The notes beneath the pieces are model-generated. The model was not told the origin of the DNA. It saw only the letters and a list, made by a program, of their open reading frames with translations, and did not search any database. A stretch of 64,000 bases of DNA from Macrostomum lignano (lineage: Eukaryota), in the NCBI GenBank assembly GCA_002269645.1, contig NIVC01003016.1:61201-125200 (forward strand). The letters run 5' to 3'. The position numbers were made by a program, and so were the translations under genes. This document shows positions 2,966 to 63,062 of this stretch, piece by piece (position 1 is the first letter of the stretch; every line of letters starts with the position of its first letter).

Positions 2966-3721
2966 TCAGGTGACTTTAGGACCCGTATAGTCAACGGTGC
3001 CGCAGACGAAGTCCCTGGGTTGGGGAATTTCTAGCAGGTAGACGTGCTTAGACTGTTGCTCGTCATCAGCTGACAGATGCTGCCGATTCTGTTCCTCGCT
3101 GTTAGGCAAGGCCACTTCCCGGTAGTAGCGGCAGACCCGCTGGCCCAAGTCGTGATCGTACGGCGGCGCCAGGATGTCAATAAAAGCCGCTCCGTCGCCC
3201 AGTGCCTGCAGCTCGTGATAGCCGCCCTCAGACGGGGTCAGCAGGAGCGGCTGTGAGGCAGAGGTGAACACGCCGTCAGTAGACAGGGTGACGGCAGTCA
3301 GCTCGGGCAGCTGCCATCGAGGCAACAGACGAGCGGCCAGAGCGGCTTTGGCGGCTGCGGCGGCCGAGGCGGAGGCTGGCGAATAGGCGCGACAGCGCAG
3401 ACTGCCGTGGATGAGGCGGCACAGGCCGAACATGTCCGGATGATCGTGCAGCGGGATCCGGGCGCCGGGGCGCAGAACAAATATGCCCATAGACAGTGCG
3501 GCATTCTCAACTATGTGCAGATAGAGCACAGGCGGCGAGTGAGTGCCACTGGCGTCCGTGACGAGGCGGGTGTCAAAGTCCACATCCTTGGTGCCGACAT
3601 TCGACAGCAGCTGCAGCAGGCGGGCGAGGCCGTCCTTGCTGACGCTTGACGCGCCCTGCTCAGTGACGGACGAAAATAATTGATAGGCAGCATTGGCAAC
3701 AGCTGCTATGCGGGTGGTCAT
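2966..3721 (-). CDS. ADO: 2-aminoethanethiol (cysteamine) dioxygenase, PCO/ADO cupin family, single coding exon, 251 aa
   Basis: Family motifs SMGIFVLRPGARIPLHDHPDMFG (HxH metal site), FIDILAPPYD, CRYY and C-terminal FVCGTVDYTGP. Confidence 0.93.
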   Translation of the reverse strand: MTTRIAAVANAAYQLFSSVTEQGASSVSKDGLARLLQLLSNVGTKDVDFDTRLVTDASGTHSPPVLYLHIVENAALSMGIFVLRPGARIPLHDHPDMFGLCRLIHGSLRCRAYSPASASAAAAAKAALAARLLPRWQLPELTAVTLSTDGVFTSASQPLLLTPSEGGYHELQALGDGAAFIDILAPPYDHDLGQRVCRYYREVALPNSEEQNRQHLSADDEQQSKHVYLLEIPQPRDFVCGTVDYTGPKVT

Positions 3722-11054: not shown

Positions 11055-14000
11055 ATGACTGAAACCATAGAAGTGATGGCTGATGACCTATTGAACAATG
11101 ACTGCAATGTCACTCGTTCATCATCTAGAAAGGTGACCTTTCCTACTGACGAAAGTATTGTGTCTGGCTACATGGACCCACCAGATCCTTGGGGAAAGGG
11201 TAAGTACAAATTGGTGTATGAAAGAGAGACAGGGTTCTTAGGATTAGTCGTTATTAAAACTGTTAAATAAAAAAATGACGTGTTTAAAAGTTTCGTTGGA
11301 GAACCTTAAAAGGGCAGGTAAAGTGGGACACTGGTTTGGAATGTTTAGTAAAGTGCAACACCTGTTAAGAATATCAGATGAAGTGCGACACTGATTGAGA
11401 AAGCAGGTGAAATGAGACAAGCCGAGAATAATATGTTGACTGATGGAGTTGAGAAGGGTAAAGGAAGTGAGACACCGGTTGAGAAGGGTAAAAGAAGTGA
11501 AACACCCGTTGAGAAGGGTAGAGGAAGTGAAACACCGGTTGAGAAGGGTAGAGGAAGTGAGACACCGGTTGAGAAGGGTAAAGGAAGTGAGACACCGGTT
11601 GAGAAGGGTAGAGGAAGTGAGACCGGTTGAGAAGGGTAGAGGAAGTGAAACACCGGTTGAGAAGGGTAGAGGAAGTGAGACACCGGTTGAGAAGGGTAAA
11701 GGAAGTGAGACACCGGTTGAGAAGGGTAGAGGAAGTGAGACACCGGTTGAGAAGGGTAGAGGAAGTGAGACACCGGTTGAGAAGGGTAGAGGAAGTGAGA
11801 CACCGGTTGAGAAGGGTAGAGGAAGTGAGACACCGGTTGAGAAGGGTAGAGGAAGTGAGACACCGGTTGAGAAGGGTAGAGGAAGTGAGACACTGGTTAA
11901 GAAGGACAGGTAAATGAAGACACCAGCTAAATATTGATTATTCATAATATAACCATGCTGGGCATTGCAGGCTACAATTGCACTACGGAGGAGCTGGTGT
12001 GCGCCTACAAGGCTGCCTGCGACGCCAACGGAGTTCAGCCGCACCGGCACCTGCTTGAGCAGCTGCAGGGCATCGACCTGAGCGTCTGCAACGATCGCTA
12101 CGAGATGCTGAGCTGTCGCAATCTCCGGCTAGACAGCCGGCAGGTCGAAGCCCTGGAAGAGATTTTCAAACGGGTTCAGTTTAAAACGCTGGACTTTGAA
12201 AGCAGCGGCCTCGACGAAGACAGCGCCATCGCCCTGTTCGACATGATCGAGTACTACGAGTCCTGCTGCAAGCTCAACATCGCGCACAACACTAGAATCG
12301 GACTGCGCGGCTGGCAGATGTGCTCGAGAATGTTGAAGAAAACTCCGTGCCTACAGACCATTGATTTGCACGGCATCCCGCTGTCCGAGCAGAGCATCCC
12401 GGCCCTGGTTCGGTCGCTTCGGATTGGCTCCACTTTGGTTACGCTGCATTTGGAGCATTCGAATATTACTGGCCGGAATCTGCTCATACTCGGTTGGTTG
12501 CTGGGTCATTTATTTTATTTGTTTTATGGTATCGCATTCTACAGGTGTGTCCAAATGAGAGATTCGAAGTTCGGCTAGAGCGCACTTCAGGCGACATTGT
12601 CACACAACCGGCGAGAGGTATTACTGCCCATTCCGCCGACTCCCCTTAGCAGGCACACAAGCGCGCGGATACGTACGCAGTCATACGCACAGGCACACAC
12701 ACACAGGAGCGGGGGCATCACAAACCCAAGAAATCACAACTCTGAAAAGCGCTTTCCATCAAAAACCCGAAATATCATAAACCCGAAATATCATAACTCC
12801 GAAAGTTCTAGCAATGTCCAACACTATTTTAGTTTTCGAAGTTATGATATTTCGGGTTTGTGATATTTCGGGTTTATGATATTTCGGGTTTATGATGTTT
12901 CGGGTTTATGATATTTCGGGTTTATGATATTTCGGGTTTGTGATATTTCGGGTTTATGATATTTCGGGTTTATGATATTTCAGGTTTATGATATTTCGGG
13001 TTTCTGATGGCGACCCACACAGAAGTGTACAGCGGCCCTAACTTTATATTATCGTTAGGCATGTACACTTCACTGTGCCTTGGGGGTTGGCTCTCTAGGG
13101 TGTTAATTGCACGAGCAGAGCCAAGCCGAGATGCCAATTTAGCCTCAAATTAATGTGACTGCTCTGGGAATCGAGCCTGGGCCGCTGGCACATCTGAGCG
13201 TTGCCCCAGACCACTGGACAACGGCCCCCCGATGAAAATATTTTTTATTTTAATCAATAGTTTATTTTTAGCATAGAACCAGCCTTTAAATGTTTTCTAC
13301 CAAACAAACGTTTCCCGGCCTTCTATATTTATATCGTCCTTCGTTAATCGTTATGATCCTTATATGATCCCTAGCTTTTCTTAAATTTGTGTACTGAGTT
13401 ACCTCTGAATATATTAATAAATATCTATGCCAACCTATCCTCCTCAGTAACGGCCCTACGCATCAACGAGAGCCTTCGCGAGCTGCTGTTGGCCGACAAC
13501 AAGATGACCAGCAGCGATGGCCAGCACCTGGCCAGCTTGTTGAGAAACACGCCAACTCTGCAGATGCTGGACGTGCGGAACAATGCTCTGCAGGTGCGCT
13601 TGAATGACTTTGATAAGTTTAGAGGCCAAGCTTACAGGCGTAAACAGCTTGCTAATTGGTTCAGCCATGACTGGAACAACCGGGAAGGCAATAAACATTG
13701 GGTGGCGGGGCGGGGGGTTAAAAGCCAATAAATACGCCTCTGTCTTTAAAAATACATTAAAATGCTTCGGTTTAACTTACTACTGAACTGACAGTAGCTT
13801 GCGCGTATAAATTTGCTGCGTGGCCCATCTAGTTATATTCTAGTATCTGTGTTCAAGGCCGAGTTTTGATTTGAGCTGCCCCATTCAGCTTTGTACTAAG
13901 TACTAACCGCAGCCAACTCTGCTTAACTTGCATCGCTATTCTATACTCGTGTTGTCATAGCGACCCTTATAGATTCTATCTGACATTTATTTGACCTTCA

Positions 14001-17000
14001 TTTGGGCGTTTTATTTGACCTTCATTTAACCCCCTCGGGCAGGACACTGGCTGCGCGTACATCTGCGAGGGCCTGTACGAACAGCAGGGCGGCGAGTGCG
14101 GCCTGGCCGCGCTGGTGCTGTGGCACAACCAGATCAGCCACGAGGCCATGCCGGCGGTGTCCGCCGCCCTAGCCGTCAATCGGCATCTGCAAACGTTGAA
14201 CCTCGGGCACAATCTGATTGGCAGCGAGGGCGTCCACCTGCTGCGCGAAGGCCTATTACGTAATCGAACTCTGCTTAGACTCGGCCTCCAATGGTGCCGA
14301 ATCGCTTGCGAAGGCGCTGTAGCCTTGGCCGAATGCCTGGCCGAGAGTCCCCAGCTGCTCAGGCTGGACCTGCGCGACAATCAGATTCGAACTGCCGGTC
14401 TCATGGCGCTTAAATTGGCGCTTAGCGTTAATAAGAGTCTGACCAGGCTCGACCTGGACAAAGACATCAAGAAGGAACCCGTGAGTCTATTGCGCTACCC
14501 TAGAGAGTTGCTAAATTTTGGTAGTAGATTTCAGCTGACCTCATATAACCTCAATAGAGCTTTTTAAACCTTATTTGGCCCTTTTTGTCCCATCAGAATA
14601 GCGTAGGCGTTTGGCATATATTAGGTTAAAATAGACCTCGATGCTAAAAGAAAAGTCTAGGAGCTATATTAATAAAATAATATTCCAGGTACCCTGGCGC
14701 AGTACACACAAGCGTTCCATTACTGTACACAGCACGCACTCATACACACCAGGGGCGTCGCCATCGAGGGGGGGGACATGTCCTCCCCCCAGTAATATGG
14801 GGGGACATGCCAATGCTTTGCCCCTTTTGTGACCTGTTATGAAAATCAATAATGTTGCTTCAGGGCAGCAAAATATAGCGCCTGCGGCACTAAAGTGAGT
14901 GTCTGCGGCGCTAAAATGAGTGTCTGCGGTGCTAAAATGAGTGCCTGCGGCGCTAAAATGAGTGCTTTTTTACCTTAAGCCTAGTTGACCTCACTTAAAC
15001 CCTAATACCATAACGCGAATTCAACGCAGAGCATGAAGGACTACGCCGAGCAGCAAGGCGCCCTATTAGAAGCGATCGGCGCCCTGCTCCAGCGGAATCG
15101 AGCTCAGGCTCGCGACAAAGAGCTGCGCCAGCTGGACGAGCAGCAGCGCCTGATGGAGCGCGAAGAGGAGACCTCCAGCCAAGACTCGCTGCAACGGCCC
15201 CGCTTCGTGCCGCCGCAGCCTTCGCCCATAGCAACTGATGATGGCGACGCTTCAAACGACGATGGGGCGCCGTCTCGACCGGCGGACCTGTCGGTGTCCA
15301 CCGCCGAGGTTTCGGCTCCGTTTGCTTGCGTCACGTCGCCAACAGATCGAGTTCTGGGCGTTGAGGATATCGTTGTTGGATTTAACGCTGCCGCCGGCGC
15401 CAACGCGTCACTGCTGCTGGTGGCGCCTGCGGCAGCCACCAATTCCGACGGAGATGCCGGTGCCTCTGCATTGGTAAGTATCCTGTATTTGGAGTCTCGG
15501 ATTCTTGACGGAGGATGTCTCATTTTCTATTTAAAAGCCCGATACATGTTAGTGGATGTCGGATTCTTGGTGTTGGATGTCGGATTCATGTTGGTAGATG
15601 GATTCATGTTGGTGGATGTCGGATTCATGTTGGTGGATGTCGGATTCATGTTGGTGGATGTAGGATTCATGTTGGTGGATGTCGGATTCATGTTGGTGGG
15701 TGTCGGATTCATGTTGGTGGATGTCGGATTCATGTTGGTGGGTGTCGGATTCATGTTGGTGGATGTCGGATTCATGTTGGTGGGTGTCGGATTCATGTTG
15801 GTGGATGTCTGGTTCATGTTGGTGGATGTAGGATTCATGTTGGTGGATGTCGGATTCATGTTGGTGGGTGTCGGATTCATGTTGGTGGATGTCGGATTCA
15901 TGTTGGTGGGTGTCGAATTCATGTTGGTGGATGTCGGATTCATGTTGGTTGATGTCGAATTTATTTTGGTGGATGTCAGATTCGTGTTGGTGGATGTCGG
16001 ATTCATGTTGGTGGATGTCAGATTCGTGTTGGTGGATGTCGGATTCATGTTGGTGGATGTCGGATTCATGTTGGTGGATGTCGGATTCATGTTGGTTGAT
16101 GTCGAATTTATTTTGGTGGATGTCAGATTCGTGTTGGTGGATGTCGGATTCATGTTGGTGGATGTCGAATTTATTTTGGTGGATGTCGGATTCTCGGTGT
16201 TTGATGTCGGATTCATGTTGGTGGATGTCGGATTCGTGTTGGTGGATGTCGGATTCGTGTTGGTGGATGTCGGATTCGTGTTGGTGGATGTCGGATTCGT
16301 GTTAATGGATGTCGGATTCATGTTGGTGGATGTCGGATTCATGTTGGTGGGTGTCGAATTCATATTATGTGCTGAAAAAATATTAGCAATGGTTCTGGAA
16401 CAACCCTTAGCTACTGAAAATTTCAATTCTCGTTGATTGACTCTATCTTTGTATTTTACCTTTTTTAGGCAACCCCGCAAGACCCGCTTAGCAATGATCA
16501 ATTCGAAATCGGCTCAGTGGGTGATGCTGACCTGTCCAGCTTGAATACTCCTGAGTCTACCGCTCAGCTTCAGGATGAGTCCGCCGCCCAGCCTCATCAG
16601 GATGAGTCGACCGCCCAGCCTCATCAGGATGAGTTTACCGCTCAGCTTCAGGATGAGTCCGCCGCCCAGCCTCATCAGGATGAGTCTACCGCTCAGCTTC
16701 AGGATGAGTCCGCCGCCCAGCCTCATCAAGATGAGTCTATCGCCCAGCCTCATCAGGATGAGTCGACCGCCCAGCCTCATCAGGATGAGTTTACCGCTCA
16801 GCTTCAGGATGAGTCCGCCGCCCAGCCTCATCAGGATGAGTCTACCGCTCAGCTTCAGGATGAGTCCGCCGCCCAGCCTCATCAAGATGAGTCTATCGCC
16901 CAGCCTCATCAGGATGAGTCGACCGCCCAGCCTCATCAGGATGAGTTTACCGCTCAGCTTCAGGATAAGTCTATCGCCCAGCCTCATCAGGATGAGTCAA

Positions 17001-21299: not shown

Positions 21300-24200
21300 T
21301 TGTGTCGATGGTGCTGGATATCCACTAAACACACTCACTCGTGTCAATGGAGCTGGATATCCACTAAACACACTCACTCGTGTCAATGGAGCTGGATATC
21401 CACTAAACACACTCACTCGTGTCAATGGAGCTGGATATCCACTAAACATAACACACTCACCCGTGTCAATGGAGCTGGATATCCACTAAACACACTCACT
21501 CGTGTCAATGGAGCTGGATATCCACCAAACACACTCACCCGTGTCAATGGAGCTGGATATCCACCAAACACACTCACCCGTGTCAATGGTGCTGGATATC
21601 CACCAAACACACTCACTCCTGTCAATGGAGCTGGATATCCACTAAACACACTCACCCGTGTCAATGGAGCTGGATATCCACCAAACACACTCACTGCACC
21701 CGTGTCAATGGAGCTGGATATCCACCAAACACACACCCGTGTCGATGGAGCTGGATATCCACCAAACACACTCACTGCACCCGTGTCAATGGAGCTGGAT
21801 ATCCACCAAACACACTCACCCGTGTCGATGGAGCTGGATATCCACCAAACACACTCACTGCACCCGTGTCAATGGAGCTGGATATCCACTAAACACACTC
21901 ACCCGTGTCAATGGAGCTGGATATCCACCAAACACACTCACCCGTGTCGATGGAGCTGGATATCCACCAAACACACTCACTGCACCCGTGTCAATGGAGC
22001 TGGATATCCACTAAACACACTCACCCGTGTCGATGGTGCTGGATATCCACCAAACACACTCACCCGTGTCGATGGAGCTGGATATCCACCAAACACACTC
22101 ACTGCACCCGTGTCAATGGAGCTGGATATCCACCAAACACACTCACCCGTGTCGATGGAGCTGGATATCCACCAAACACACTCACTGCACCCGTGTCAAT
22201 GGAGCTGGATATCCACCAAACACACTCACCCGTGTCAATGGAGCTGGATATCCACCAAACACACTCACTCCTGTCAATGGAGCTGGATATCCACCAAACA
22301 CACTCACCCGTGTCAATGGAGCTGGATATCCACCAAACAGACTCACCCGTGTCAATGGAGCTGGATATCCACTAAACACACTCACCCGTGTCGATGGTGC
22401 TGGATATCCACTAAACACACTCACCCGTGTCGATGGAGCTGGATATCCACCAAACACACTCACTGCACCCGTGTCAATGGAGTTGGATATCCACTAAACA
22501 CACTCACCCGTGTCGATGGAGCTGGATATCCACCAAACAGACTCACCCGTGTCAATGGAGCTGGATATCCACTAAACACACTCACCCGTGTCAATGGAGC
22601 TGGATATCCACCAAACACACTCACCCGTGTCAATGGAGCTGGATATCCACTAAACACACTCACCCGTGTCAATGGAGCTGGATATCCACCAAACACACTC
22701 ACTGCCCCTGTGTCAATGGAGCTGGATATCCACCAAACACACTCACCCGTGTCGATGGAGCTGGATATCCACCAAACACACTCACCCGTGTCGATGGAGC
22801 TGGATATCCACTAAACACACTCACCCGTGTCGATGGTGCTGGATATCCACCAAACACACTCACCCGTGTCAATGGAGCTGGATATCCACTAAACACACTC
22901 ACCCGTGTCAATGGAGCTGGATATCCACTAAACACACTCACCCGTGTCAATGGAGCTGGATATCCACCAAACACACTCACTGCACCCGTGTCAATGGAGC
23001 TGGATATCCACCAAACACACTCACCCGTGTCGATGGAGCTGGATATCCACCAAACACACTCACCCGTGTCGATGGAGCTGGATATCCACTAAACACACTC
23101 ACCCGTGTCGATGGTGCTGGATATCCACCAAACACACTCACCCGTGTCAATGGAGCTGGATATCCACCAAACACACTCACCCGTGTCAATGGAGCTGGAT
23201 ATCCACTAAACACACTCACCCGTGTCAATGGAGCTGGATATCCACCAAACACACTCACTGCACCCGTGTCAATGGAGCTGGATATCCACCAAACACACAC
23301 CCGTGTCGATGGAGCTGGATATCCACCAAACACACTCACTGCACCCGTGTCAATGGAGCTGGATATCCACCAAACACACTCACCCGTGTCGATGGAGCTG
23401 GATATCCACCAAACACACTCACTGCACCCGTGTCAATGGAGCTGGATATCCACTAAACACACTCACCCGTGTCAATGGAGCTGGATATCCACCAAACACA
23501 CTCACCCGTGTCGATGGAGCTGGATATCCACCAAACACACTCACTGCACCCGTGTCAATGGAGCTGGATATCCACTAAACACACTCACCCGTGTCGATGG
23601 TGCTGGATATCCACCAAACACACTCACCCGTGTCGATGGAGCTGGATATCCACCAAACACACTCACTGCACCCGTGTCAATGGAGCTGGATATCCACCAA
23701 ACACACTCACCCGTGTCGATGGAGCTGGATATCCACCAAACACACTCACTGCACCCGTGTCAATGGAGCTGGATATCCACCAAACACACTCACCCGTGTC
23801 AATGGAGCTGGATATCCACCAAACACACTCACTCCTGTCAATGGAGCTGGATATCCACCAAACACACTCACCCGTGTCAATGGAGCTGGATATCCACCAA
23901 ACAGACTCACCCGTGTCAATGGAGCTGGATATCCACTAAACACACTCACCCGTGTCGATGGTGCTGGATATCCACTAAACACACTCACCCGTGTCGATGG
24001 AGCTGGATATCCACCAAACACACTCACTGCACCCGTGTCAATGCAGTTGGATATCCACTAAACACACTCACCCGTGTCGATGGAGCTGGATATCCACCAA
24101 ACAGACTCACCCGTGTCAATGGAGCTGGATATCCACTAAACACACTCACCCGTGTCAATGGAGCTGGATATCCACCAAACACACTCACCCGTGTCAATGG

Positions 24201-24686
24201 AGCTGGATATCCACTAAACACACTCACCCGTGTCAATGGAGCTGGATATCCACCAAACACACTCACTGCACCCGTGTCAATGGAGCTGGATATCCACCAA
24301 ACACACTCACCCGTGTCGATGGAGCTGGATATCCACCAAACACACTCACCCGTGTCGATGGAGCTGGATATCCACTAAACACACTCACCCGTGTCGATGG
24401 TGCTGGATATCCACCAAACACACTCACCCGTGTCAATGGAGCTGGATATCCACTAAACACACTCACCCGTGTCAATGGAGCTGGATATCCACTAAACACA
24501 CTCACCCGTGTCAATGGAGCTGGATATCCACCAAACACACTCACTGCACCCGTGTCAATGGAGCTGGATATCCACCAAACACACTCACCCGTGTCGATGG
24601 AGCTGGATATCCACCAAACACACTCACCCGTGTCGATGGAGCTGGATATCCACTAAACACACTCACCCGTGTCGATGGAGCTGGTC
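21300..24686. repeat. Satellite array, 39-bp unit GTGTCAATGGAGCTGGATATCCACCAAACACACTCACCC (44-bp variant with CTGCA), with higher-order periods
   Basis: More than 80 units; near-identical variant patterns recur at +1564 bp (ORF starts 21658/23222, 21905/23469, 22027/23591, 22427/23991, 22944/24508) and at +278 bp. Confidence 0.97.
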
Positions 24687-28570: not shown

Positions 28571-29154
28571 TTGTTTCTCATTTACCTATTCACATCTTAT
28601 TCACATCTCTGAAAAATTAAATAACAATCGAATACAACAGACTTTCTGAAAAATTCACAAGAAATGAAACAATAAAATTGTTGTAGGAATCAAACTCGGA
28701 ATATATTGACAAAATAAGAACACTCGTTAGAAGCCTCGCTAACTAAAAACTATGCAATTATTCTAAATAATCCTGGTCACCCGGAAAAATCAAAAACTTT
28801 ATAATGCATAATAAATTAATCGTAAAATTGGTCAGTAAGTATGAAGTCCAACCTTACTTGAGCTGAACAATGGCAAGTCAGAGAAGATCGGATCATATTC
28901 GACTATACTACTTGCAACACCAGTAGTGAGATACTTTTGCCAGTAAAAAAATAATTATAAGTGATTAGTCAATGTATAAAAAAATAATTATAAGTGATTA
29001 GTCAATGTACTAGATATACTACTTAAATTGGCACACCAGTAAAATATGAGAAAATGATAAATATAAGTAGTTTTTGCGCTTCTTGGGAAATTAATTATGC
29101 GTTTAAGTTTAGACACATGTAAAAGCCTTTTTTCTAATTGTTGTGGAATTTCTC

Positions 29155-30310
29155 TTGCTATTCCCTCTCCTGTTACTCAGTTGCAGTGCCATTCCCTCTC
29201 CTGTTACTCAGTTGCAGTGCCATTCCCTCTCCTGTTACTCAGTTGCAGTGCCATTCCCTCTCCTGTTACTCAGTTGCAGTGCCATTCCCTCTCCTGTTAC
29301 TCAGTTGCAGTGCCATTCCCTCTCCTGTTACTCAGTTGCAGTGCCATTCCCTCTCCTGTTACTCAGTTGCAGTGCCATTCCCTCTCCTGTTACTCAGTTG
29401 CAGTGCCATTCCCTCTCCTGTTACTCAGTTGCAGTGCCATTCCCTCTCCTGTTACTCAGTTGCAGTGCCATTCCCTCTCCTGTTACTCAGTTGCAGTGCC
29501 ATTCCCTCTCCTGTTACTCAGTTGCAGTGCCATTCCCTCTCCTGTTACTCAGTTGCAGTGCCATTCCCTCTCCTGTTACTCAGTTGCAGTGCCATTCCCT
29601 CTCCTGTTACTCAGTTGCAGTGCCATTCCCTCTCCTGTTACTCAGTTGCAGTGCCATTCCCTCTCCTGTTACTCAGTTGCAGTGCCATTCCCTCTCCTGT
29701 TACTCAGTTGCAGTGCCATTCCCTCTCCTGTTACTCAGTTGCAGTGCCATTTCCTCTCCTGTTACTCAGTTGCAGTGCCATTTCCTCTCCTGTTACTCAG
29801 TTGCAGTGCCATTCCCTCTCCTGTTACTCAGTTGCAGTGCCATTCCCTCTTCTGTGAGTGAGACACAATGCCATTCTCTCTTCTGTGAGTGAGACACAAT
29901 GCCATTCTCTCTTCTGTGAGTGAGACGCAATGCCATTCTCTCTTCTGTGAGTGAGACACAATGCCATTCTCTCTTCTGTGAGTGAGACGCAATGCCATTC
30001 TCTCTTCTGTGAATCAGTCACAATACCATTCTCTCTTCTGTGAGTGAGACGCAATGCCATTCTCTCTTCTGTGAGTGAGACACAATGCCATTCTCTCTTC
30101 TGTGAGTGAGACACAATGCCATTCTCTCTTCTGTGAGTGAGACGCAATGCCATTCTCTCTTCTGTGAGTGAGACACAATGCCATTCTCTCTTCTGTGAGT
30201 GAGACACAATGCCATTCTCTCTTCTGTGAGTGAGACACAATGCCATTCTCTCTTCTGTGAGTGAGACACAATGCCATTCCCTCTTCTGTGAATCAGTCAC
30301 AATACCATTC
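29155..30310. repeat. Bipartite 31-bp minisatellite: CCATTCCCTCTCCTGTTACTCAGTTGCAGTG (to ~29845), then CCATTCTCTCTTCTGTGAGTGAGACACAATG
   Basis: About 22 plus about 15 copies with an abrupt switch at ~29848. Confidence 0.96.
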
Positions 30311-30374
30311 CCTGTCCTGTCCCCCAGCCAGCATCCAGTTCCGTTGCCCTACAATGTCTCCAGCATCCAACAGT

Positions 30375-36970: not shown

Positions 36971-37294
36971 TCACTTGTCCTTCCTAGAAGACTTAGCGCC
37001 AACGCTAACATCATTTTCATCTGTAGAGTTATTAACGCGAACAGGTTGCCATTTCAGCGGATTCCGCCTGTACATCGGCCACGGTGGCAGCGTTAGTAAG
37101 GCAGCAATGGCAAAGCCAATGCCCAGGATGTACACAGTGAGCGAGAACTGCTGGTAGGCGTAGCCGCACGCAAAGCCAATAGTGGCAAAAATGCCCAACA
37201 CCCATTGAAAGGCAGTTTCAGCACAACGCTGACCTTCAAAATCCATGTGCGATGGTGGCAGCCGACTTTTTAATGCATTAATTAGACTGTACAT
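36971..37294 (-). CDS. SPCS1: Signal peptidase complex subunit 1 (SPC12), single coding exon, 107 aa
   Basis: HMDFEGQRCAE, two TM segments, GFACGYAYQQFSLTVY and LTLPPWPMYRRNPLKW are diagnostic of the SPC12 family. Confidence 0.95.
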   Translation of the reverse strand: MYSLINALKSRLPPSHMDFEGQRCAETAFQWVLGIFATIGFACGYAYQQFSLTVYILGIGFAIAALLTLPPWPMYRRNPLKWQPVRVNNSTDENDVSVGAKSSRKDK

Positions 37295-42545: not shown

Positions 42546-43054
42546 GGTATTAAGGAAAACTTCGTGTAATTAGCAATTTTATGACCTGCCATTCAACGTA
42601 CTCGTACAAGTGAATACTTTGCACTTGTTTTAGTCTTACGCACAGAATTTTTATTGAACTTCAGTAATTTATGTAGTATCGTAAAAATTGTTTGCATTTA
42701 AATTTCGAACTTTGTTAAAGTTTTGTTTTTGTTGTCAGAATTGGCTTTTGCGTCATTTCTCTGCTCTTATCAAGTTGTAGTTTGCGCAATGTATAAGGCC
42801 TGCTGTGCGCATTTAATAGTTGTATTTCGAAGTTATTTTGTGTGGTAAAACAAACTTGCTTTTAAACAAGTTATTTTTTGCTCCATTGTTTTTATTGTTG
42901 ATATTTTCATACAGTTTAGAAAATCATTCATTTGATGTCTGACGCCCCTCAAAGCCTACCAAAAAACTGAGATAAAGATCAACATCTACTAAAATCTAGT
43001 TAGACATAATGCTCTTATACTTAGAATTAAGAAACCCAACACAATACTTACGAC

Positions 43055-43600
43055 TCCACCATCCCCTCAAACCCCACCATCCCCTCAAACCCCACCACCC
43101 CTCAAACCCCACCACCCCTCAAACCCCACCACCCCTCAAACCCCACCACTCCTCAAACCCCACGAACCATGAACTCCCACCACCCCTGAACTCCCACCAA
43201 CCCTCAACTCCCACCACCCTCAACTCCCACCACCCCTCAAACCCCACCACCCCTCAAACCCCACCACTCCTCAAACCCCACGAACCATGAACTCCCACCA
43301 CCCCTGAACTCCCACCAACCCTCAACTCCCACCACCCTCAACTCCCACCACCCCTCAGACCCCACCACCCCTCAAACCCCACCAACCCTGAACTCCCACC
43401 ACCCCTGAACTCCCACCAACCCTCAACTCCCACCACCCCTCAACTCCCACCACCCCTCAAAGCCGACCATCCCAAACTCCAACCTTCAAATGCCACCACC
43501 CCAAACCCCACCACCTCAAAACCCACCATCTCTCAAACTACACCACCCCCAAATCCAATAACCCCGTCAAATTCCACTGCACCTCAAACCCCACCATCCC
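43055..43600. repeat. C-rich ~19-bp degenerate tandem repeat (CTCAAACCCCACCACCCC)
   Basis: Runs directly into the DCAKD acceptor CCCTTCAG. Confidence 0.9.
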
Positions 43601-43605
43601 TTCAG

Positions 43606-45463
43606 TACCTGGTCGGTCTAACCGGCGGCATCGCGTCGGGCAAGTCAACGGTGGCGGACCAGCTGCGCCGAATGGGCGTGCTGGTGATCGACGCCGATTC
43701 GGTGGCCAAGTCGGCGCTGGAGCCGCGCCAGCCAGCCTGGGCCCAGGTTGTGCGAGAATTTGGGCCAGGCGTGCTGCTGCCAGACTCTGACGAGATTGAC
43801 AGGGACCGACTGGGCGCCATCGTGTTTGCCGACGCTGGCAAGCGGGCCAAATTGAATGCAATCGTGCATCCTACTGTTTACAGAGAGATTGCCTACCAGT
43901 TGATTTATCATTTCTTTATGCTGGAGCAATTTGTTGTGCTGGAATTGCCGCTGCTGTTTGAGAAGTCTGGCGCCGGCATGCTGCCCTGGCTGACCGAAGT
44001 TGTCGTTGTTTACTGCCGCCCCGAGCAGCAGCTGGAGAGACTGATGAGGCGGAATCCTCAGTTGACTGAGGAGCAGGTGGGTGCTGTTAATCGCTGAATT
44101 GCGGAAGCTAAAAAAAAGGCAGATTCTCAAACACTGAGGGGGAGCGGAGAGGCAGATTCTCAAACACTGAGGGGGAGCGGAGAGGCAGATTCTCAAACAC
44201 TGAGGGGGAGCGGAGAGGCAGATTCTCAAGCACTGATGGAGAGCGGAGAGGCAGATTCTCAAACACTGAGGGGGAGCGGAGAGGCAGATTCTCAAACACT
44301 GAGGGGGAGCGGAGAGGCAGATTCTAAAGCACTGATGGAGAGCGGAGAGGCAGATTCTCAAGCACTGATGGAGAGCGGAGAGGCAGATTCTCAAGCATTG
44401 ATGGAGAGCGGAGAGGCAGATTCTCAAGCACTGATGGAGAGCGGAGAGGCAGATTCTCAAGCACTGATGGAGAGCGGAGAGGCAGATTCTCAAGCACTGA
44501 TGGAGAGCGGAGAGGCAGATTCTCAAGCACTGATGGAGAGCGGAGAGGCAGATTCTCAAGCACTGATGGAGAGCGGAGAGGCAGATTCTCAAGCACTGAT
44601 GGAGAGCGGAGAGGCAGATTCTCAAGCATTGATGGAGAAGAGAGGCAGATTCTCAAGCATTGATGGAGAAGAGAGGCAGATTCTCAAGCACTGATGGGGA
44701 GAGCGGAGAGGCAGATTCTCAAGCATTGATGGAGAAGAGAGGCAGATTCTCAAGCACTGATGGAGAGCGGAGAGGCAGATTCTCAAGCACTGATGGAGAG
44801 CGGAGAGGCAGATTCTCAAGCACTGATGGGGAGCGGAGAGGCAGATTCTCAAGCACTGATGGAGAGCGGAGAGGCAGATTCTCAAGCACTGATGGAGAGC
44901 GGAGAGGCAGATTCTCAAGCACTGATGGGGAGCGGAGAGGCAGATTCTCAAGCACTGATGGAGAGCGGAGAGGCAGATTCTCAAGCACTGATGGAGAGCG
45001 GAGAGGCAGATTCTCAAGCACTGATGGGGAGCGGAGAGGCAGATTCTCAAGCACTGATGGAGAGCGGAGAGGCAGATTCTCAAGCACTAATGGAGAGCGG
45101 AGAGGCAGATTCTCAAGCACTAATGGAGAACGGAGAGGCAACTAATGTCAATCTCTGCAGGGTTAACAAATAAAAGTGGTAATTATTTCACGCTCACCCC
45201 CCCCCCACTAGGCCAAGCAACGCATCGCAGCCCAGCTGCCATTGGACTCGAAGGTAACCAAGGCTACTGTGGTGATTGACAACCAGCACAGCGAGGCGCA
45301 CAGCAGGGACCAGGCGGTGCGGCTGTACAAAAGACTTCTAGCAAGCCGAGCGCAGTGGATTTCGCGCAGCCTGTTCACCGCAGGAGTGGCAGTACTGGCC
45401 GCTGTGGTCGGCCTGCCGTTCTACCTGTGGTCGGCAAGGCTGTCTAGAAGTGCCGCATTGTAG
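43606..45463 (+). CDS. DCAKD: Dephospho-CoA kinase domain-containing protein; exons 43606-44076 and 45212-45463; initiator Met absent from the genomic exon
   Basis: YLVGLTGGIASGKST P-loop, IDAD, IDRDRLGAIVF, LNAIVHP, LELPLLFE, RIAAQLPL, IDN and a C-terminal hydrophobic tail; the intron is phase 0. Confidence 0.95.
44118..45140. repeat. Intronic minisatellite, 33-bp unit GGCAGATTCTCAAGCACTGATGGAGAGCGGAGA
   Basis: About 31 copies filling the DCAKD intron. Confidence 0.96.
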
Positions 45464-47060: not shown

Positions 47061-48977
47061 ATGACCGAGCAGCTAAGTAGAATTATTGAAACAACGTTCG
47101 GACATGGCCTCAGACAGAAACTGCAAAGCAGGTACGACTCGTTGGTGGATCACGCCAAGGTTTATGTGACAGGTGAGGTCAACGTTTAATAAAATTGTAC
47201 CTCTCAGCTAGCCAGCCCAGCTAGCCACCCCAGCTAGCCACCCCCAGCTAGCCACCCCCAGCTAGCCACCCCCAGCTAGCCACCCCAGCTAGCCACCCCC
47301 AGCTAGCCACCCCCAGCTAGCCACCCCCAGCTAGCCACCCCAGCTAGCCACCCCAGCTAGCCACTCCCAGCTAACCACTCCCAGCTAGCCGCCCCCAGCT
47401 AGCCGCCCCAGCTAGCCACCCCCAGCTAGCCACCCCAGCTAGCCACCCCCAGCTAGCCACCCTTAGCTAGCCACTCCCAGCTAGCCACCCCCAGCTAGCC
47501 ACCCCAGCTGGCCACCTCCAGCTAGCCACCCTTAGCTAGCCACCTCCAGCTAGCCACCTCCAGCTAGCCACCTCCAGCTAGCGACCCCCCAGCTAGCTGC
47601 AAAGTACAAATTAATTCATTAAAAGAAATATAAAACAACATCTGCTTTTCAAACTCGAACTCCTCAATCCTCTCATCTCAGGCCATCTTCTTTGGCTGCT
47701 CATAGCTCCCACCGAACTCAATCGGATTTTGTTCACAAATCGCCGAGCCACATTTGTCTCAGCTTTGCGCGATATCGGCTTAGAAAACGGATCAGTTAGC
47801 GAAGTTTGGTCTGCTAATGGTTTCTATCTGGTTGCTATGGACTCGTCTAGCGGTATCGGAACAGTGCGCTGCTGCTTTTGCGGCTGCTTCTGTCAGATAC
47901 AGCCGGGGTTCGATGCCGACTATGAGGCTGTGCTGCGGCTGCATACAGAATCAGCATTGTCCAAGGGTACTCATTGTTCTGTAGTGAGTCTACTGAGTAT
48001 GCAAGTTGCTGATCCAGCTGGAATTGCTGCTCAAGCCAGACGGATAGCTGGCGACATGAGAAAATTGAGATTGGCTTTGGAACTATTGCCCGTGCAGCTG
48101 GCTTCCAGCTATGGCTACTCGGTGAGCTGTGAGCGGCATTTAAACAGAGTCTGACTCAGCTGGCTAATGACCGATGCAGAGTCTGACTCAGCTGGCTAAT
48201 GACCGATGCAGAGAGTCTGACTCAGCTGGTTAATGACCGATGCAGAGAGTCTCACTGAGATGGTTAATGACCGATGCAGAGAGTCTGACTCAGCTGGTTA
48301 ATGACCGATGCAGAGAGTCTGACTCAGCTGGTTAATGACCGAAGCAGAGTCTTACTGAGATGGTTAATGCCCGAAGCAGAGAGTCTCACTGAGATGGTTA
48401 ATGACCGATGCAGAGAGTCTGACTAGCTGACTACGGGTGGCTAGCTACAGCAAAAGTTTGTGTAAAAGTCGCCAATAGGCAGCTGCATAAAATATTCAAA
48501 TTTCAGGCGAATCTTCTTTGTTTAAGCATCGCCCGCCACCTCTACTCCATCAAACTGATTGGCCCAGACAGTGATGGCGCTTTGCCCAGCCTCCGAGCTG
48601 GCGATATCATAGCCTTGGCTCTAAATATGGAACAATTTTACTACTATAGCGATTTCGACATTCTCGGTTTAATAGATTTGGCTCTAGTTGATCAGCCTAC
48701 TATTAGTAGTAATCAGCTGGTTCAACAGTCAGTTGTCTCAGTTACACCAATGGGCTCTGGTGTTGCTACCGCTGCCGCGGCGCCATCCGGCCCAGATGCA
48801 ACTGTCGCCGCCAATGCCGACGATGAAAAATGCTCTCGATGCCGGATGAGAACTCGGAATCGAGTGTCGCTTCCGTGCGCACATTTTGTCTCGTGCGAGC
48901 GCTGCTTAGAGCTGTCAGGGGCCTGTCTCCGCTGTCACGGTGTCGTGTTGGCTAGCCTAGTGGCGTACATTACTTAA
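47061..48977 (+). CDS. IAP-like protein with one divergent BIR-like domain and a C-terminal RING; exons 47061-47172, 47682-48121, 48507-48977 (340 aa)
   Basis: RRATF...ANGFY...VRCCFCG...H...C (BIR-like); CSRC..RNRVSLPCAHFVSCERC...CLRC (IAP-type RING); junction phases 1 and 0 keep frame. Confidence 0.75.
47205..47597. repeat. Intronic 13-14-bp minisatellite CAGCTAGCCACCCC
   Basis: About 28 copies in IAP-like intron 1. Confidence 0.95.
48143..48430. repeat. Intronic ~35-bp tandem repeat AGAGTCTGACTCAGCTGGTTAATGACCGATGCAG
   Basis: About 8 copies in IAP-like intron 2. Confidence 0.92.

Positions 48978-51145: not shown

Positions 51146-63062
<11,917 letters not shown>

Follow-up and report, generated by a model that had tools for sequence, protein, structure and literature searches.

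The spliced leader very probably supplies the start codon of a DCAKD gene in the flatworm Macrostomum lignano

Introduction

[quoted passage not shown] The stretch of DNA analysed here comprises the final 64 kb of contig NIVC01003016.1 in the Mlig_3_7 assembly (GCA_002269645.1) and is referred to as the window; it contains a gene for DCAKD, a dephospho-CoA kinase domain-containing protein of the CoaE fold, and window DNA encodes residues 2-241 of this protein only, beginning directly after a splice acceptor. The question raised by this locus is where the start codon comes from. A first-pass annotation had suggested that it depends on trans-splicing, and our analysis supports that suggestion: the spliced leader very probably supplies the DCAKD start codon by trans-splicing, given the fit of the acceptor to the published motif, a leader that is in frame, the lack of a consensus cis exon and the start of the gene model of a paralogue. 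Positions are those of the window (record position minus 61,200), and the GenBank annotation was carried over from a 20,252-base locus that is 100% identical to window positions 35212-55463. In splice sites and starts of coding sequences (CDS) a slash marks the boundary.

The DCAKD gene and its missing initiator methionine

Positions 43598-43605 read CCCTTCAG and are followed from 43606 by TAC CTG GTC GGT CTA ACC GGC GGC, the translation of which is YLVGLTGGIASGKST (YLVGLTGG IASGKST); these letters and their translation place a phase-0 acceptor before residue 2, as the first-pass annotation had it, and the repeat DNA that it reported upstream is a 17-bp tandem array (Table 1). The open reading frame (ORF) is unbroken across both DCAKD exons of the window copy, and the spliced protein is 99% identical to the M. 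lignano DCAKD entries, which likewise begin YLVGLTGG. Regarding other animals, it shows 41-46% full-length identity to DCAKD proteins of vertebrates, insects and molluscs and shares with them the P-loop and the C-terminal hydrophobic tail, exon 2 aligning with the C-terminal part of these proteins.

Seven animal DCAKD homologues open MFLVGLTGG, MFIVGLTGG or MYLVGLTGG, in agreement with the earlier description of a common M-F/Y-L-V-G-L-T-G-G start (the third residue being L or I), and in their alignment the only column empty in the M. lignano copies is column 1, the Met, while the P-loop GLTGGIASGKST is invariant. The Pfam CoaE profile (PF01121) matches the Met-prefixed protein with 178.7 bits (cut-off 27) and E = 1.2e-52 over profile positions 1-177 of 180, and profile position 1 falls on the Tyr. 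Thus, from both the homologue alignment and a CoaE profile that begins at this Tyr, exactly one Met is missing, and the other listed animal genes differ from the M. lignano copy in carrying their own initiator Met.

No in-frame ATG is present upstream of 43606 across the 105 open codons that precede a stop, and in the window copy these codons are repeat-derived and proline-rich. The first in-frame ATG of the genome is that of Met-23 at 43672, which lies past the P-loop, so a start there would delete it. No genome-encoded start codon gives the conserved N-terminus, and the earlier statement that DCAKD is without its initiator Met holds on the combined evidence of the alignment, the start of the CoaE profile and the lack of an upstream in-frame ATG. 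A start encoded in the genome, whether at the internal Met-23 or at a non-AUG codon close to the 5' end, and whether or not the transcript is trans-spliced, is extremely improbable: an ATG is available at 43672 and the weak context of the leader AUG (UGCAUGU) makes some leaky scanning conceivable, but loss of the invariant P-loop would be expected to leave an inactive protein, and the 100% conservation of residues 2-22 among the copies of the gene argues for their translation.

The acceptor and the spliced leader

A single spliced leader has been described in M. lignano, a 35-nt sequence (CGGTCTCTTACTGCGAAGACTCAATTTATTGCATG) ending in ...TTGCATG (PMC8629364), and the general statement of the first-pass annotation that flatworm leaders end in AUG is therefore true of this species. 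The leader is found on about 30% of M. lignano genes, with conserved genes over-represented among them (69.9% of the trans-spliced genes are conserved with human; PMC8629364), and for Macrostomum the final ATG of the leader is called a translation start codon in the genome paper on M. cliftonense and M. hystrix (PMC10468722).

The top motif at the 21,754 mapped M. lignano trans-splice acceptors is [T/C]TNCAG (PMC8629364), which CTTCAG at 43600-43605 fits; the motif is found at only 9551 of the 21,754 known sites (PMC8629364), so the fit is supportive and not diagnostic. The acceptor is not placed where it is by chance. Within 43001-43800 the motif [T/C]TNCAG occurs just once, as CTTCAG at 43600 (density of the motif in the window, 0.0027 per base), and from 43541 until 43643, a position inside exon 1, there is no AG other than that of the acceptor at 43604.

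Joining the leader to 43606-44076 and 45212-45463 gives an uninterrupted protein of 241 residues, MYLVGLTGG...SAAL, and the leader, which has no other ATG, contributes the first ATG of the modelled mRNA. The sequence-level features of genes that start on a leader AUG, namely a leader ending in AUG, an open in-frame ORF and no usable genomic start, are thus all found at this locus. An SL (spliced leader) RNA gene was not detected in the window when up to three mismatches were allowed, and no match to an Rfam family was found in the window.

From these elements the following course of expression is proposed. The pre-mRNA would be transcribed from somewhere upstream and through the minisatellite, which would form part of an outron, the 5' segment of a pre-mRNA that is discarded on trans-splicing. 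The spliceosome would then join the 35-nt leader (ending ...UUGCAUG) to CTTCAG/UAC at 43606, with an expected leader-exon junction of ...TTTATTGCATG/TACCTGGTCGG, i.e. CAATTTATTGCATG joined to TACCTGGTCGGTCTAACCGG. The 3'-terminal AUG of the leader would be the first AUG of the mRNA, in frame and directly before Tyr-2, and scanning ribosomes would start on it to make MYLVGLTGG..., with MYLVGLTGGIASGK as the predicted N-terminus. We infer both that the leader is joined at 43606 and, by analogy with Schistosoma mansoni, that its AUG initiates DCAKD translation.

Gene models of DCAKD

The Mlig_3_7 gene models were made by trimming the leader from RNA-seq reads, cutting transcripts at read peaks and calling ORFs with TransDecoder (PMC5730564). 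The paralogue model PAA84875.1 (BOX15_Mlig005497g2) is flagged as 5'-partial and starts exactly at the Tyr, and the contiguous DNA of that paralogue holds an open frame with an in-frame ATG 57 codons upstream of it; the longer ORF was not called despite this ATG, which places the 5' end of the transcript model at the acceptor. Such a start resembles a trans-spliced 5' end and suggests one. Older UniProt entries based on the ML2 assembly also start at the Tyr.

The window copy is represented in GenBank by exon 2 only, annotated as an 83-residue 5'-partial CDS (P0121) that starts at cactag/GCC and has an in-frame TAG directly upstream. This model was either broken by the 33-bp minisatellite of the intron or reflects an internal trans-splice site, and in the latter case, with a site at 45212 in phase 0, the leader AUG could yield a short C-terminal fragment. 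The annotated 240-residue paralogue is spliced at the same intron position as the window copy, in which the donor of exon 1 at 44077 is GTGGGT. The 90% protein cluster of DCAKD contains genome-annotation entries only, and the name 'Mlig005497' is absent from the supplementary files of PMC5816591 and PMC5730564. Gene names in M. lignano are based on clusters, and the suffix 'g2' has no bearing on operon order (PMC5730564).

The annotated M. lignano DNA covered here, about 120 kb, contains 14 annotated CDS starts, and 4 of them are non-ATG starts right after an AG; two of the four are DCAKD models, and after merging of paralogous copies 3 of about 8 distinct genes start in this manner. An Amidohydro_1 gene (position 16949 of locus L004, NIVC01000282.1) has a CDS that starts without ATG at ttttaag/GCAATGAAC, as does a bZIP gene (position 13060 of locus L006, NIVC01000282.1) at ccgcag/GCAGCCGTC. 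These two genes are candidate leader-AUG ORFs or, alternatively, have incomplete models.

The upstream region and the evidence for a cis-spliced start

Several points weigh against a start codon supplied by the leader. Seven weak, non-consensus ATG/GT sites lie 2.4-5.8 kb upstream of the acceptor and one of them (41178) is conserved in a paralogue; no upstream gene lies on the same strand, which means that trans-splicing is not called for by operon processing. In GenBank no CDS is annotated over exon 1 of the window copy, and expression of this copy is predicted only. The annotated CDS of the window contig starts without ATG at an acceptor that is evidently a cis acceptor, that of exon 2 at 45212, which makes a non-ATG start after AG suggestive of trans-splicing and not specific proof of it. 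Finally, exact look-up among 15 billion proteins returned none of the Met-prefixed forms of the window protein, P0001 and P0122, and the unprefixed window protein was likewise absent.

The first of these points bears on the alternative named in the first-pass annotation, a cis-spliced upstream exon ending in ATG, or carrying an ATG and a short N-terminal extension, that is joined to 43606 and would be an ordinary unannotated first exon. The upstream ATG/GT search proposed at the time gave the seven sites, all between SPC12 and the acceptor (37789, 37835, 38745, 39146, 40039, 40913 and 41178), and no consensus candidate in 13 kb. The block containing site 41178 (ATG/GTTTTA) shares 93% identity with the paralogue, the GT[G/A]AG consensus is missing from about 35% of the donors in M. 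lignano (122,399 of 187,627 match it; PMC8629364), and the annotation of the window copy, with exon 2 only, is plainly incomplete, all of which leave room for such an exon. Against this, the GT[G/A]AG consensus is present at none of the seven sites, ATG/GTRAG does not occur in the 13 kb upstream of the acceptor, and none of the five consensus GT[G/A]AG donors in the 6.3-kb interval between SPC12 and the acceptor, to which a first exon would be confined, has an ATG in an open frame ending at the donor, the nearest of them (41170) being preceded by TAA. In addition, two independent annotations (ML2/UniProt and Mlig_3_7/GenBank) begin at the Tyr with no upstream exon, and the homologues are without an N-terminal extension. 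A cis-spliced start is consequently improbable.

Comparison of the three DCAKD copies

The assembly carries three copies of DCAKD, that of the window and those on NIVC01000356.1 (locus L001) and NIVC01000282.1 (locus L006). M. lignano has been described as a hidden polyploid with many redundant gene copies (PMC10468722, PMC8629364). The junction CCTTCAG/TACCTGGTC (CCTTCAG/TACCTGG) is invariant in all three. Upstream of it, indels of 1, 6 and 15-16 nt set the copies apart and no reading frame is conserved; downstream, the only difference in the first 60 coding bases is that the eighth genome-encoded codon is GGT in the NIVC01000282.1 copy and GGC in the others, and the first coding difference between the window and the NIVC01000356.1 copy is at codon 52. 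The coding sequences of these two copies share 97.6% identity, 12 of their 17 differences being synonymous and 5 non-synonymous, and exon 1 is 97.9% identical to that of the paralogue, compared with about 84% identity and many gaps in the kilobase upstream. The ratio of synonymous to non-synonymous differences and the weaker identity of the flank indicate that DCAKD is under purifying selection and that conservation starts at the acceptor.

The 17-bp array holds an in-frame ATG in the NIVC01000356.1 copy (at about 9830 of L001, 57 codons upstream) and in the NIVC01000282.1 copy (45 codons upstream), where it would add a proline- and histidine-rich extension and could mislead gene predictors. 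These ATGs look accidental, since the window copy has none in its array and the indels between copies shift the frame.

The same comparison bears on the possibility that the copy in the window is silent or decaying, a duplicate whose 5' end was removed by minisatellite expansion; the missing ATG would in that case be a sign of gene death and not of a mechanism. GenBank annotates its exon 2 alone, hidden polyploidy leaves M. lignano with many redundant copies, and minisatellites both flank and fill the gene. Set against these observations are an ORF that is intact in both exons, the contrast between the coding sequence, with its 12:5 ratio, and the 84% identical flank, and the fact that all three copies, including one with a full-length annotated model, share the junction and have no ATG. 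A silent copy is very improbable, and the missing start ATG and the junction common to the three copies imply that the loss predates their duplication and is not a lesion of the window copy.

A broader proposal, that the leader dependence of all three copies predates genome duplication and that DCAKD belongs to a widespread class in which many '5'-partial' Mlig_3_7 models are complete by way of the leader AUG, is possible and somewhat doubtful; if true, a considerable part of the conserved genes in a flatworm lineage that branched off early could be translated only after trans-splicing.

Features of the locus and neighbouring genes

The coordinates of DCAKD and of its neighbours are listed in Table 1. 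Within the unique spacer upstream of the 17-bp array, identity to the paralogue is about 84% with many gaps and no GTRAG donor was detected. The intron of DCAKD consists almost entirely of a 33-bp minisatellite (44117-45140, 31 copies).

Table 1. Features of the DCAKD locus and annotated neighbours in the window
Feature	Position	Strand	Remarks
PCO_ADO cysteamine dioxygenase-like gene	2966-3721	-	251 residues, single exon; identical protein on three contigs
Start of an 840-residue gene	11055 to beyond 13721	+	Annotated
SPC12 (signal peptidase complex subunit 1)	36971-37294	-	107 residues, single exon; annotated; nearest gene upstream of DCAKD (6.3 kb)
AT-rich unique spacer between two minisatellite arrays	42548..43055	+	Putative part of the outron or promoter-proximal region
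17-bp C-rich tandem array	43056..43601	+	32.6 copies, consensus CCACCACCCCTCAAACC (Tandem Repeats Finder, TRF); reaches the acceptor; non-coding, presumed outron and pyrimidine-rich tract
3' splice acceptor CTTCAG	43600..43605	+	Proposed spliced-leader trans-splice acceptor, phase 0 before codon 2
DCAKD coding exon 1	43606..44076	+	Residues 2-158 (YLVGLTGGIASGKST...TEEQ), includes P-loop GGIASGKS
DCAKD cis intron	44077..45211	+	1135 nt; acceptor ...cactag
DCAKD coding exon 2	45212..45463	+	AKQRIAAQ...SRSAAL and stop TAG; C-terminal hydrophobic tail
RING-finger gene PAA53840.1 (BOX15_Mlig019982g1)	47061-48977	+	340 residues, own ATG; downstream neighbour of DCAKD

The SPC12-DCAKD-RING-ADO neighbourhood occurs three times in the assembly (NIVC01003016.1, NIVC01000356.1 and NIVC01000282.1). 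A downstream operon gene would be expected to follow another gene on its own strand at a distance of no more than 1 kb, repeats subtracted; DCAKD was rejected as such a gene, SPC12 being divergent and 6.3 kb away; no genes are called within 10 kb upstream of the paralogue DCAKD. On the other side, 1.6 kb separate the DCAKD stop from the RING-finger gene, of which 0.8 kb are a 37-bp array, and under the published repeat-adjusted 1-kb rule the RING-finger gene could share the DCAKD transcription unit. The introns of the RING-finger gene were reconstructed as 47173-47681, with a 14-bp minisatellite, and 48122-48506.

Introns and intergenic DNA of the window are filled by minisatellites, about 25 distinct arrays in all, which have units of 12-54 bp and reach up to 3.4 kb in length, for example at 21302-24684, 44117-45140, 29156-30320 and 1-914. 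Paralogues hold arrays at the same sites with very different copy numbers, a 24-bp array extending over 0.5 kb in the window and over more than 2 kb in the NIVC01000356.1 locus. The arrays give long spurious ORFs on both strands, such as those of 528 and 570 codons in the 39-bp array at 21302-24684, and a Pfam scan of ten large window ORFs showed most of them to be minisatellite read-through with no family. A 397-residue ORF at 56351-57544 had no record by protein look-up. The plus-strand ORF at 29097-29861, which overlaps a 31-bp minisatellite (29156-30320), has a short Pfam YL1_C match of 15 residues that is probably either a small real exon beside the repeat or a chance match.

Significance

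If confirmed, the start of DCAKD on the leader AUG would mean that a conserved, metabolic-type gene of a free-living and genetically tractable flatworm is not translatable into functional protein unless it is trans-spliced. '5'-partial' M. lignano models may then be complete and need only the leader Met to be added, and an artificial ATG would have to be supplied in transgenes made from genes of this kind. The ATG loss shared by the three copies would also illustrate how trans-splicing can become indispensable once a start codon has been lost. No new question is opened, as this mechanism was already established for Schistosoma in 2006.

Comparison with known systems

The use of the 3'-terminal AUG of a flatworm leader as initiator Met is established in S. 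mansoni (Cheng et al. 2006, J Biol Chem 281:733, as cited in PMC9851317, PMC12582326 and PMC5832876), and what the first-pass annotation said of Schistosoma agrees with the literature as cited in PMC9851317 and PMC12582326. According to the summary in PMC9851317, the leader AUG is in frame in 28% of the trans-spliced S. mansoni transcripts, with more than 40 cDNAs depending on it (Cheng et al. 2006). DCAKD resembles these mRNAs in the leader ending in AUG, the phase-0 acceptor before the first genomic codon, the lack of an own start codon and the homology by which the leader Met is seen to restore a conserved N-terminus. The differences are that S. mansoni is a parasitic trematode with another leader sequence and the gene is another one, whereas M. 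lignano is a free-living macrostomorph whose leader junction and leader-AUG initiation are predicted from DNA sequence.

The trans-spliced genes already described in M. lignano (Wudarski et al. 2017, PMC5730564; Ustyantsev and Berezikov 2021, PMC8629364) come from the same organism and assembly, and DCAKD is like them in its fit to [T/C]TNCAG, in being a conserved gene of the housekeeping type, a class reported as enriched, and in the repeats that fill its upstream region, a feature also reported of intergenic and outron DNA. It differs from them in that the DCAKD locus is not downstream in an operon, the nearest annotated upstream gene being on the other strand, and in the question addressed, the leader AUG not being analysed as a start codon in PMC5730564 and PMC8629364. 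The spliced-leader ORFs (slORFs) of nematodes, ascidians and euglenozoa (slORFfinder, PMC9851317) similarly take their start codon from the leader and not from the gene; however, these are mostly alternative or overlapping ORFs, often with non-AUG starts, whereas the leader AUG of DCAKD would start the canonical conserved protein. The proposed mechanism is that of Schistosoma and already known, and DCAKD is a clean, homology-anchored Macrostomum example of it that specialists would expect.

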